64,000 nucleotides of DNA. Source: Phaeosaccion multiseriatum. Taxonomy: Eukaryota; Protista; Ochrophyta, other classes. The notes below the pieces were generated by a model. That model searched no databases and had not been told where the DNA came from. It was given only the letters and a program-made list of their open reading frames with translations. Positions 52,353 through 63,019 of this stretch are shown piece by piece. The translations under genes and the position numbers were made by a program. The stretch is taken from contig OZ218956.1 of assembly GCA_965112735.1 (NCBI GenBank), positions 2,170,001 to 2,234,000 on the forward strand, given 5' to 3'. The first letter of the stretch is position 1, and each line of letters starts with the position of its first letter.

Positions 52353-55300
52353 ATGCCACTGAGCCCGAAAAAGAAGGAGGAGGAGGTCTATTACGAAGCG
52401 GACAGCGAAGAGGAGGAGGAGGATCGTAAGTGGGATTCTTCTCCTTATCGATTTGATTGAGATGATCATAGTGATGATGAACGAGAATAGATCTGCAAGC
52501 TGAAAAGACCTTTTGGTCCACACCATACTGACCCTCAACCTGTGTGTTCGCTGTGCGTTGTCTCGCAAGGCCGTGATGAGGCGGCTAGTAAGCTGCAGAG
52601 CCTATACCGCGCCAAGAGGGCCAGGCGCCTCCTTAGGCTCCTCCTCAGGGCCGAGTACATCAAGGAGTACGACAAGGTCAGAGTGGGTGGGTGGGGCCGC
52701 GGCAGCACCTGACAGCATCGGGGGGGGGGGGAAAGGGGGTAGACTCAGAGGCTACCGATGATCCTCTATAAGTATCCGTCCTCCAACTTCCTCCCTCTCC
52801 TGCATCCGTCCTCCAGACGTCTTTGTGTGCCAAAGAATCACAGCCCTTCACGAATTGATTGAATTACTCGGGAGAGGGGGGAAGGGTTGGGGTGGACACT
52901 ATGAACAAAACCGAAAACACTGTCAGCCAACCCAAACGGCGATAGGCGTGGTAATTTTTTCCATCCTTGCCTCCCATCTCTCCCCTTGCTCTTACGCCCT
53001 TTCGACTGCTCCTCTCTCTCTCTCTCTCTCTCTCTCTCTTATCAATCAGGAACTTTCTTGCTATGTGTACCGCCACAAGCGCTCTGGCGCCACTACCATC
53101 GAAAAGCCCAAGTTCTTGGGAGAGGACGACTTGGAAACCCCCACCGTCTACGTGGTGCGTGCGTGCGTGCGTGGGTCAGTCGCCAGGCCAGGCCGGTCCA
53201 TCCCGGTACTCCTCCTCACCCACCGGCTTAGCTGCTCAGAGAATGAGGAGGAGGAGAGGACACAAGGGACCATGACGTAGTAGTAGTAGAAGTAGTAGTA
53301 GAAGTAGTAGTAGAAGTAGTAGTAGTAGTAGTAGTAGTAGTAGTAGTAGTAGTAGTAGTAGTAGTAGTAGTAGTAGTAGGAGTAGTGGTAGTAGTAGTTG
53401 TTGTATCGGAGCCCAAGGGGGAGTGGAGGCGCTAAAGTTGGGGTACGGGGAAGCCCAACATCTCTCGCGTGCCAACCCCTGCCAACCCCTCCCCCCACCT
53501 GCCTTCTTTCGTGTCGCCTCTCCATCCTCTCTATAGAGCCCCCCCGGGTACGACCCCGGAGTCTCAGCCATGCCTCAATTCGCGCTGGTGGTGAGCAACT
53601 TCACCTTTGGCAACGATCAGATACCCAACCTGCCCTCCCAAGTCGTGGAGGCGGACCATGATGTGAGTGCGTGAGTGACTCTCTGCTCCTCCCTTCCCGC
53701 CTCACACCGTGAGTATGGGGGGGGGGGGGAGGGGCGCTCCAACCGCCCCAAACCTTTCAACAACCTCCCGGCACAGCCGCTGCTTATGTTCCGTCGAGCG
53801 ATCGACAGCCTCTTGAAAGAAAGGAACCTGATTATTGAGATGGACACTGAGACCAACCACAGCCAGCAAGGCTTGCTCCCCCTTCCTTCCACTCTTCATC
53901 CTTAAAGACTTTGGTGCTTTGTGATGGTCTGATGGTCTGACCTTGACGGATGGCTCTGTCTCTCCCCCCCCTCTCTCACCCCCCCCCCCCCCCCTTCCTG
54001 CTCCTTCTCCTCCTTCTTCTGCTCCTCCTCCTCCTCCTCCTCCTCCTCCTCCTCCTCCTCCTCCTCCTCCTCCTCCTCCTCCTCCTCCTCCTCCTCCTCC
54101 TCCTCCTCCTCCTCCTCCTCGTCCTCCTCCTCCTCCTCCTCCTCCTCCTCCTCCTCCTGCTCCTCCTCCTCCTCCTCCTCCTCGTCCTCCTCCTCCTCCT
54201 CCTCCTCCTCCTCCTCCTCCTCCTCCTCCCCCTTCTCCCCCTTCCCCCCCTCTTGCTACCCAAGGCCATTCACGACGTCTTGCTGCACCCCTACTACGCC
54301 AAGTTCGAGCGGGAGAACTCTCTCTTCCTCAAGGTTAGTGCGGAGTGTAAGGTGTTAGGTAGGGTCGAATAAACTGAAGCTGCAACTGAAGCTGATACTG
54401 CAGGTGAAGCTGGATCGGGTCAGGGTGATGTGATGGCGAGATGGGGGGTTGGGGTGGGGGAAGGAAGGAAGGAAGGAAGGAAGGAAGGAAGGAAGGAAGG
54501 AAGGAAGGAAGGAAGGGAGGAAGGAAGGAAGGAAGGGAGGGAGGGAGGAAGGAAGGAACCCCCGCCGCTCGCCGTTACGTAGGAGGTTTCTATCTGTTTG
54601 GTTGTATTGATGGATTAATATGTTCACTTCACTTCACTCACTCTGGTCTCTCTTCGATCGATTGATTGATTAATTGATCGCCCTGTGACCTTGTGAACAG
54701 GACGCGACGTGCGAACTGTTTGAAGCGAGTCTAGAGAGCATGAAGGGGACCGTCAAGCTTGGTGAGGAGGGTGGGATGTGGGGTCAGGAGGGTAGGGTAG
54801 GGGGTGCGGTTGGGCGGGAGAGGGAGAGGGAGAGAGAGATGAGGAGGAGCAGTGGCGAGGGATGAGAGGATGGAAGGAGAGAAGGAAGCAAGGAAGGAAG
54901 GAGGGGAAAGAAGGCGGAAAGGGAAGGACGGGTAAGAAGGAGGAAGGAAGGAAGGAAGGAAGGAAGGAAGGAAGGAAGGAAGGAACGAAGGAAGGAAGGA
55001 AGGAAGGAAGGAAGGGACGAAGGAACGAAGGAACGAAGGCGAGAACGTCCCACTGAGGCCTCGGCAACGGCCCCTCCAGGGCGTAGAGAAGCGTCGCTGA
55101 AGGCTTCGTTCCTTCGGGCGGTCAGAAATTTAAAGTCAAACTCAAACATAACGCCATGTCACACTCAGGCATCGAGCGATGGCGGAGGAAGCGGCTCGAG
55201 TGGCTGGAGATTCGCCTCGCGGAACTGCAGGCAGATGACGATCAGATACCCATGCATCTCCAGGAGGAGATGGAGCACCTCGAGCAGTTGGTAGCACAGA

Positions 55301-61300: not shown

Positions 61301-63019
61301 TTCAGGTGTGTGTGTGTGTGTGTGTGTGTGTGTGTGGACGGAGGGAGAGAAGGAGGAAGGGAAGGGAGGGAGGGAAGGGAGGGCAGGAAGGGAGGGAAGG
61401 GAGGGAGGGAGGGAGGGAGGGAGGGGGGGAGGGAGGGAGGGGGGTAGGGGGGAAGGGAGGAAGGGAGGAGAGGGAGAGGAGGAGGGAGGGAGGGAGCTTT
61501 CTTTAGAGCTTTGTATTTGTCATCGTGTCGAGGTCATGCGATGCAGGGGTTTTGTAGTGTCTGTCTGTCTGTCTGTCTGTCTGTCTGTCTGTCTGTCTGT
61601 CTGTCTGTCTGTCTGTCTGTCTGTCTGTCTGTCTGTCTGTCTGTCTGTCTGTCTCTCTGTCTGTCTGTCTGTCTGTCTGTCTGTCTGTCTGTCTGTCTGT
61701 CTGTCTGTCTGTCTCTCTGCCTGTCTGTCCCTCCGTCTATGTATCTGTCTCTCTGTCTGTCTGTCTGTCTGTCTGTCTGTCTGTCTGTCTGTCTGTCTGT
61801 CTGTCTTTCTAGCAGAGGCCGATTCGTGGTTATGGCAGAGACGCTTCTCCCACTGTAATCTCTCCCCAACCCCCCTCCCCTTCCCCCTTCGTGTCCCCGT
61901 ACACTACCATCCAACGACCGATCGATCGATGGCAACCTATGGCAACCTATGGCAACCTATGGCATTGGATGGCAGCTCAAGGGCTGCATGCTCCTCGGCT
62001 GGGTCCTCCGTGGCCGAAGTGAGACCTCCCCCCCCGCCTTTAATGAGGAGAGCATCCGGCGAGTTGCCGTGGTGCTAAGGGTAGCGCGTGAGAAGCACCC
62101 CGTCAATGACTCGGTCATCGCCGCAAGCGGGTGGGCCTGGGGCAGTCTAAAGGTGCGACGGGGGGTCGGTGGGGTCAGAGGTGTGAGGTATCAGGTGTCA
62201 GGTGTGAAGGGTCAGGTGTCAGGTGTCAGGTGTCAGGTGTCAGGTATCAGGTATCAGGTATCAGGTATCAGGTGTCAGGTGTCAGATGTCAGGTGCCATG
62301 TATCAGGTCACTGCCCCACTCTTACAGGTACCTCTCTCTCTTCTTCTCTCCCTCTCTCTCGGTCGCTCTCTCTCTTTTCTGTCTCTCTCTCTCTCTCTCT
62401 GTGTGTGTGTGTGTGTATGTATGTGCTGAAACGCTGACACCAGGCACTGTACCGAGAGGACCTGCACGGTCCCTTTGGAGGGCGGCCGACAACTTTCTGC
62501 GGGTCCTTCGATCCCAGCCTGTCCACCTCCCTCACCCTCACTAACACGGCCAGCAACAGCAACGGCCACAGCAACAACGGCAAAGGGAATAGCGGGTCGA
62601 CCCATGGGTCTAGCAGCGGGGAGGAGGGGGATGAGGGTGGCAGTACATGCACAGCAGGGGGGCTGTCGAGAGGGACAGAGGAGCACTCTTCTTACGACGG
62701 ACTTGACATTGAAGACTTGGACGTGGAGAGCGACGATGACAGTGGTAGCACTCTCACTCAAGACCCCGAGGAGGAGGAGGAGGAGGAGGAGGAGAAGGAA
62801 GAGGAGGAGGACGGGGAGGAGGAGGAGGAGGAGGAGGAGGAGGAGGAGGAGGAGGAGGAGGAGGAGGAGGAGGAGGAGGACGGGGAGGAGGAGCAGGAGG
62901 AGGAGGAGGAGGGCAAAGACAGGTTGTCGCCGATGGAAAGCCAGCAGCAGCTCCCGGACTTTCGCGCAACGGCAGACATTATCATCTCCGAGACCATGGT
63001 AGCGAACTCCACAAGCTGA
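52353..63019 (+). CDS. IQ - WW-like - inactive caspase-fold (C14-like) - FN3 - ARM-like multidomain protein, 18 exons
   Basis: Exons 52353-52425, 52570-52676, 53050-53154, 53537-53662, 54265-54333, 54701-54761, 55169-55758, 56190-56272, 56660-57637, 57901-57970, 58490-58600, 59338-59610, 59805-60002, 60343-60447, 60810-60865, 61140-61305, 61976-62152, 62444-63019 all join in phase. IQ: [18 protein letters not shown]-like: [27 protein letters not shown]. Caspase strands: [57 protein letters not shown]3: SLHLHW...YEV...[27 protein letters not shown]-like: [32 protein letters not shown]. Confidence 0.82.
53277..53397 (+). repeat. (TAG)n microsatellite
   Basis: Intronic tandem TAG run. Confidence 0.93.
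54023..54229 (+). repeat. (CCT)n microsatellite
   Basis: Intronic, upstream of the acceptor at 54264. Confidence 0.93.
58705..59335 (+). repeat. (TG)n (58705-58915) and (CCT)n (59025-59335) microsatellites in one intron
   Basis: Directly visible. Confidence 0.93.
60009..60225 (+). repeat. (GGA)n microsatellite
   Basis: Starts just after the donor at 60003. Confidence 0.92.
60570..60704 (+). repeat. (GTT)n microsatellite
   Basis: Directly visible. Confidence 0.93.
61557..61805 (+). repeat. (CTGT)n microsatellite
   Basis: Directly visible. Confidence 0.93.
62186..62309 (+). repeat. 7-bp tandem repeat (TCAGGTR)n
   Basis: Roughly 15 TCAGGTG/TCAGGTA units inside intron 62153-62443. Confidence 0.88.

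Follow-up and report, generated by a model that had tools for sequence, protein, structure and literature searches.

Gene structure of the locus

The window analysed here is a whole stretch of 64,000 nucleotides from Phaeosaccion multiseriatum (assembly GCA_965112735.1, contig OZ218956.1, positions 2,170,001 to 2,234,000 of the forward strand), and our subject is a gene within it, at positions 52353-63019 (+), whose product contains a core related to the C14 (caspase-type) family. In the open-frame listing of the three plus-strand frames, 18 exons chain from an ATG at 52353 to a TGA at 63017-63019, giving a coding sequence of 3,924 nt and a protein of 1,307 amino acids (aa) without an N-terminal signal peptide. 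All 17 introns run from GT to AG with consistent phases and sizes of 144-737 nt, and most of them hold a microsatellite array. An earlier reading of the DNA letters (the sequence-only reading) had proposed these 18 exons as one frame, and its introns, phases, start and stop check out, so that the presence of an 18-exon gene with caspase-type motifs is confirmed at the level of the sequence. Searches of the host genome (67 Mb, 22 contigs) found no paralogue of exon 7 or exon 9, indicating a single-copy gene.

Nine of the 17 exon junctions (E4/5, E5/6, E7/8, E8/9, E9/10, E10/11, E13/14, E14/15 and E16/17) are supported by brown-alga orthologues, because these, with introns placed differently, run through the junctions as one open reading frame (ORF) or as an annotated protein of the brown alga Ascophyllum nodosum (P0128, described below). 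Long false ORFs arise from microsatellite introns in the P. multiseriatum genome; at 57611-58615 (+, in the exon 10 frame), that exon continues through a (GAGG)n intron into exon 11 as a stop-free ORF of 335 aa.

Table 1. Exons of the C14-type gene, with positions in the window. L002, L003 and L006 are orthologous brown-alga loci; P0001 and P0128 are orthologous proteins.
Exon	Position	Strand	Content
1	52353..52425	+	Start codon and acidic N-terminus; donor GTAAGT; acidic Y-Y-E-x-D kept in L002/L003
2	52570..52676	+	IQ motif (Pfam PF00612)
3	53050..53154	+	Degenerate WW-like hairpin
4	53537..53662	+	C14 strand beta1 (FALVVSN) and the loop after it; 56% identity with L002
5	54265..54333	+	Helix alpha1 and start of beta2; in L002 joined without break to the end of exon 4 and the exon 6 equivalents
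6	54701..54761	+	beta2/alpha2 (D-A-T-C... helix)
7	55169..55758	+	Coiled/acidic insertion of ~135 aa, then beta3 with the His (CAC 55630-55632), hairpin and helix alpha3
8	56190..56272	+	beta4, D-V-V-H-S; Val (GTG 56238-56240) at the catalytic Cys position
9	56660..57637	+	beta5 (VVIGSC), then an acidic/Gly-rich insertion of ~250 aa, then start of the C-terminal helix
10	57901..57970	+	C14 C-terminal helix (VVEGLKG); joined directly with the exon 9 and 11 equivalents in P0001/P0128
11	58490..58600	+	Final C14 helix (IRVSEF...)
12	59338..59610	+	Ser/Asn/Asp-rich linker and conserved stretch before FN3; E 5e-5 to 2e-4 against L002/L003/L006
13 and 14	59805-60002, 60343-60447	+	Single FN3 domain, split by an intron
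15-17	60810-60865, 61140-61305, 61976-62152	+	Armadillo-type helical repeats
18	62444..63019	+	Ser/Gly-rich, poly-Glu acidic tail and TGA stop; Pfam matches to low complexity only

Homology of the core to bacterial C14 domains

The caspase-type motifs lie where the sequence-only reading had placed them, namely FALVVSN in exon 4, T-H-S in exon 7, D-V-V-H-S in exon 8, VVIGSC opening exon 9, a SLFGA/VVEGLKG helix spanning exons 9/10 and IRVSEF in exon 11. A further proposed caspase element, 'QRP', had to be dropped, being neither conserved in the orthologues nor matched by any profile. Over the part equivalent to exon 7, the secondary structure of the orthologue predicted by AlphaFold2 (AF2) is strand, hairpin and helix.

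By hhalign, the family core (His strand through beta5) was compared with a bacterial C14 profile made from 42 bacterial and archaeal domains taken from genomes (234 columns). The match reached a probability of 95.3% (E 2.4e-8, 101-106 columns), a second profile-profile run on independently made alignments gave 94.3% (E 1e-7), and P0128 alone gave 93.1%; window exon 8, taken by itself, matched at 24.8% (E 7.9e-4). Among 197 column shuffles run as controls, the mean score was 11.7 with a standard deviation (sd) of 2.6 and a maximum of 22.3, against an observed score of 53.2, and reversed-query controls stayed at or below 0.6%. Likewise, in a language-model feature search (ESM-Atlas) with P0128:1-145 as query, bacterial PF00656 clusters made up 94 of the 100 nearest entries (score 0.93); the atlas search with window exon 7 returned nothing usable.

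Outside the core, single blocks of the domain were aligned to the same profile. The beta1 block of exon 4 matched best at columns 2-18 (2-3.6% alone), the beta2/alpha2 block of exon 6 at columns 37-67, the L-x-N-x-x-A-T-x-x-x-I region (8%, with a reversed control of 0.1%), and the C-terminal helix block at columns 181-223, with just 0.8-2%. Exon 11 alone found its best match at columns 206-219, the expected place (0.6%), and the start of exon 9 aligns with the beta5 columns. The best matches of all blocks thus fall at the positions expected from the C14 profile, with six blocks colinear.

Against profiles of algal metacaspases (119 p20, 107 p10 and 16 full-length sequences), single blocks and the contiguous 135-aa core gave no more than 2%, in contrast to the 94-95% obtained for the core with bacterial C14. 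The bacterial profile itself matches the algal metacaspases at 99.9%. With this low profile match and no p10 signature S-G-C-x-D-x-Q-x-S-x-D, the protein does not belong to metacaspase types I, II or III, and the proposal of a C14 domain nearer to the bacterial type than to type I or III metacaspases was supported. Because of the profile matches and the colinear placement of the blocks, we regard the family as a diverged member of the bacterial-type C14 branch; judged by its sequence, the core is homologous to bacterial-type C14 domains, yet lies below the threshold of the curated Pfam family.

Catalytic positions

C14 proteases use a His-Cys dyad. The His of T-H-S aligns to the invariant catalytic His of bacterial C14 domains, and D-V-V aligns to the invariant D-A-C of D-A-C-x-S-G, with D on D and the second V on the Cys, so that Val occupies the invariant Cys column. 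Both codons stand at the positions first proposed for them (Table 1). In the spliced protein the Cys position follows the His by 59 residues, compared with 56 in the type III metacaspase of P. multiseriatum.

A retained His and the replacement of Cys by Val had been read from the window, and a survey of orthologues extended this pattern to all relatives that cover the site. D-V-V-H is kept in the window and in seven relatives (P0001-P0005, P0128 and P0134), and T-H-S/A in every relative covering the His strand. Two residues ahead of the His the window carries Ala; the brown-alga relatives read C-T-H-S. Furthermore, the Cys of the G-S-C strand is invariant across relatives. The C14-type core, as aligned, has lost its nucleophile and kept the His, and therefore should be unable to cut by a His-Cys mechanism.

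A CX5R phosphatase loop was also considered for the G-S-C-R-I-G-G-T-R strand and rejected, because the window has Val in place of its Arg and the strand lines up with beta5 of C14.

Relatives and conservation

Relatives were sought with exon 9 among 1.84 billion cluster representatives, a search of low power because the conserved part of the exon is only 43 residues long. It returned two fragments, P0001 and P0002, both matching the first 43 residues at 60-63% identity; compared at the level of loci, this part of exon 9 is 62-64% identical with L002 and L003 and 52% identical with the orthologous locus L006. On the contigs of the two fragments (L002 and L003), exons 1-5, 7-9 and 12-16 have colinear matches, all of them on one strand, and colinear blocks recur in L006. 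Word searches added P0003, P0004, P0005 and P0134, and a cluster look-up assigned P0004 and P0005 to Ascophyllum nodosum. A search of JGI metagenome contigs with the beta5 block gave no match, and no relative turned up among the Ectocarpus proteins annotated in the database, where the power to detect one was limited. The relatives turned up in brown algae only, that is, in A. nodosum and on four contigs with Ascophyllum-like sequence.

Two spliced NCBI models are present in Ascophyllum, each named "unnamed protein product": P0128 (737 aa, CAN0280072.1) and P0130 (476 aa). P0128 begins just upstream of the His strand, ends with the helical repeats and is without any Pfam match; it joins the parts from beta3 to the armadillo (ARM) repeats in one model. 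Between lineages the conserved blocks are 45-64% identical, and the insertions, of which that in exon 9 is low-complexity sequence, diverge freely. In the L003 orthologue (Logan contig, 8218-8259 and 9073-9264), in-frame stops stand at two conserved positions, one of them in place of a Trp of L002; this may be a pseudogene copy or the result of assembly errors.

Flanking modules

The presence of IQ, FN3 and ARM modules around the core, as first proposed, was upheld by profile and structure comparisons. The IQ motif of window exon 2 scores 20.4 bits with PF00612, 0.1 bit above the cut-off of 20.3 (E 3.8e-4). The L002 equivalent reaches only 12.8 bits in Pfam; the pattern I-Q-x-x-x-R-x-x-x-x-R is kept in the brown-alga loci. 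Because of this IQ motif, calmodulin or a related light chain is a likely partner predicted from the sequence. When the IQ exon was modelled as a complex with exon 2 of the host calmodulin, the prediction scored 0.29 (mark 0.34), which speaks neither for nor against binding. The host has a canonical calmodulin gene at G000:C2:3826000-3826600 (L062 1105-1704), with one intron after the Glu codon of ...I-N-E.

The WW-like element fared less clearly. In a PDB search with the profile of the exon 3 block, the five highest-ranking matches were WW domains of TCERG1, all in register, with E-values of 0.25-0.96; PF00397 had no match in the window exons or P0128, and both signature Trp positions are replaced (by Phe/Tyr, or by Tyr/His/Ile). 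A likeness to known WW domains is thus weakly supported, an assignment to the WW family is not, and exon 3 may be called WW-like at best.

The FN3 domain (PF00041) is split in the window, with exon 13 covering positions 10-63 (14.4 bits) and exon 14 positions 64-80 (12.6 bits); in the contiguous ORF of L002 it reaches 27.5 bits (cut-off 25), over positions 2-82 of 84. For the ARM part, a sequence search with P0128:560-715 returned designed ARM proteins and importin-alpha (E 1.6e-6), and window exons 15-17 align there. AF2 modelled this part of the orthologue as six helices with a predicted local distance difference test score (pLDDT) of about 90, and Foldseek returned ARM/TPR solenoids, including ZYG11B, the LRRK2 ARM and designed ARM proteins. 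The top Foldseek match of P0128:560-715 was chain Xr of the 96-nm repeat of the bovine sperm axoneme (9fqr; E 2e-3, root-mean-square deviation 3.1, 127 columns), which offers a weak lead toward a flagellar association.

Neighbouring genes

A head-to-head neighbour lies ~250 bp upstream at 48750-52112 (-), and its long ORF encodes Kelch-like and MORN-repeat sequence and crosses a (GT)n tract; no synteny of this Kelch/MORN neighbour was seen in the brown-alga loci. Downstream, at 63520-64000 (-), the 3' part of an apparent ABC-F/eEF3-like ATPase gene, as read from its letters, leaves the end of the window.

Interpretation and alternative explanations

The explanation that we favour, with moderate confidence, is a single 18-exon gene whose bacterial-type C14 core has lost the nucleophile and probably serves as a binding module in an adaptor protein. 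The predicted order of its domains is an acidic N-terminus, IQ, a degenerate WW-like hairpin, C14, FN3, about three armadillo repeats and an acidic tail, with the C14 domain interrupted by two long low-complexity insertions. The dead C14 domain would most likely bind instead of cutting, a role suggested by analogy with the pseudo-caspase-family proteins TbMCA4 (Trypanosoma brucei metacaspase 4), the pseudo-orthocaspases and cFLIP. A peptide or a partner, possibly an active metacaspase, would dock in what remains of the substrate groove or on the dimer face. The flanking IQ, WW-like, FN3 and ARM modules would bring in calmodulin, or a light chain resembling it, along with further partners, and the protein would thus be an adaptor.

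Several observations weigh against this explanation. Pfam PF00656 gave no match at E<=10 on the exons, on the orthologue proteins or at the locus in a six-frame genome scan, which returned two canonical genes elsewhere and nothing more, and searching the PDB sequences with a profile yielded a spurious TRAP match and no caspase. The N- and C-terminal C14 blocks outside the core score weakly when taken singly (about 1-8%). Moreover, the Ascophyllum model CAN0280072.1 omits the IQ, WW, beta1 and beta2 exons, and no RNA runs over the locus were found; four sequencing runs contain the stretch, and these look like DNA because the introns are covered as well. Separate genes, another nucleophile, chance resemblance and decay have each been weighed as an alternative, and each is less likely than the single gene for an adaptor.

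At least two genes could lie at the locus, for example an IQ/WW-like protein (exons 1-3) upstream of a separate C14-FN3-ARM protein, in which case the five-module order would be an artefact of joining. We consider this unlikely. The absence of RNA runs over the P. multiseriatum region leaves room for it, as does the sole annotated orthologue, CAN0280072.1, which begins just before beta3 and has no annotation within 8 kb upstream; however, in four genomes exons 1-6 lie close together, colinear and on one strand, the phases are consistent over all 17 introns, and nothing in the sequence calls for a stop or another start. The WW-like, beta1 and beta2 exons are present, unannotated, upstream in the Ascophyllum genome (L006 6946-8778; L007 8001-11445). 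Without beta1 and beta2 (exons 4-6) the C14 domain would be incomplete, so the Ascophyllum model is plainly cut short at its N-terminus. Chance likeness to caspases, the core being some other three-layer alpha/beta domain, is very unlikely, even though no match came from Pfam, from the PDB sequence search or from the profiles of algal metacaspases, and an AF2 model of P0128:1-420, a part lacking beta1 and beta2, was unusable (pLDDT 35.8, no usable fold match). Atlas scores of at least 0.9 also occur in 4-10% of shuffled proteins, and the features shared were 141 of 256. Against chance, two independent methods select the family that had been named in advance, the hhalign score lies ~16 sd over the shuffles with six colinear blocks, and the catalytic His, Asp and Cys columns match the conserved T-H-S and D-V-V-H.

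We give equally little credence to a domain that is still a hydrolase and works with another nucleophile, either the invariant Cys of G-S-C or the brown-alga Cys two residues before the His. The His retained in all relatives, the invariant G-S-C and the C-T-H-S of brown algae would suit such an enzyme, but the window has Ala where the brown algae have the Cys before the His, and lineages with only 45-60% identity in these blocks all keep Val at the nucleophile position; we also know of no C14 member that uses the beta5 Cys as a nucleophile. A functionless, decaying relic is the most improbable of all, and hardly credible. The two in-frame stops of the L003 orthologue and the huge low-complexity insertions in the protein could be taken as signs of decay, but the frame of the window is intact over 1,307 codons in 18 exons, the blocks are conserved at 45-64% while the insertions diverge, and the matched blocks of L002 and L006 are free of stops.

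The adaptor reading may be carried further, by analogy with cFLIP and caspase-8, to a calmodulin-gated adaptor of the brown-alga lineage whose dead domain would pair with the alga's own Ca2+-dependent type III metacaspases or present substrates to them; in this specific form we hold it to be improbable. Were it true, it would be the first decoy-type metacaspase regulator outside trypanosomes and the first calmodulin link to a caspase-family module.

Animals (cFLIP), trypanosomes (MCA4) and presumably cyanobacteria have inactive regulators of the caspase family, and none is described from photosynthetic stramenopiles. Full-text literature searches found no paper on a pseudo-C14 protein in stramenopile algae, nor on a family with such a domain context, in agreement with the sequence-only reading, which knew of no account of the architecture. 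Standard surveys of algal metacaspases would miss the family because Pfam fails on it and because its sole annotated member is unnamed and truncated. For brown algae and related lineages, the protein offers a concrete candidate for the regulation of cell-death-type proteases, or for their reuse as binding modules, and it indicates that bacterial-type C14 domains persist in eukaryotes, diverged past routine detection.

Comparison with known systems

The algal type I/III metacaspases have clan and fold family in common with the C14 core and show a similar spacing from the His to the Cys position. Unlike the type III metacaspases (as defined in PMC3734836), the algal protein has an element order that is not permuted, carries no p10 signature and gives a profile match of at most 2%. 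The host genome itself encodes an intronless type III metacaspase at G000:C9:2182589-2183947 (L004 1090-2448), in which the p10 signature stands before p20 and the His-Cys dyad is intact; its best named matches are in brown algae and other ochrophytes. This canonical C14 enzyme is a candidate partner of the pseudo-C14 protein.

In animals, cFLIP is an inactive caspase homologue that acts through active family members, for example caspase-8. TbMCA4 is likewise a pseudopeptidase, an inactive homologue acting via active members of its family (PMC3220528). Both serve as models for the mechanism proposed here, which is inactive and interaction-based. However, TbMCA4 and cFLIP are close paralogues of active enzymes in their own genomes, whereas the algal protein matches its own type III metacaspase at no more than 2% in hhalign.

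The pseudo-orthocaspases of cyanobacteria and photosynthetic Alphaproteobacteria carry Tyr and Ser in place of the His and Cys (Klemencic et al. 2019, PMC6426788). Like the algal protein, they are of the C14 p20 type with a substituted dyad, conserved within their lineage and presumed to be non-proteolytic. Unlike them, the algal protein has kept the His and lost the Cys alone (to Val), is eukaryotic and intron-rich, and places its domain in another context.

The closest known counterparts of the core are the bacterial caspase-domain proteins or orthocaspases and the 'metacaspase-like proteases' of phytoplankton (PF00656; Choi & Berges 2013, PMC3734836). Compared with these proteins, the algal protein has Val in place of Cys, carries insertions of ~135 and 250 aa, sits between IQ/WW-like and FN3/ARM modules and is too diverged for the Pfam model. 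By profile-profile comparison and by language-model neighbours, the algal core is nevertheless placed with the same domain family; both lack a metacaspase-type p10 signature, and both share the order of elements, from beta1 and beta2 through the His strand, the D-x-C strand and beta5 to the C-terminal helices.

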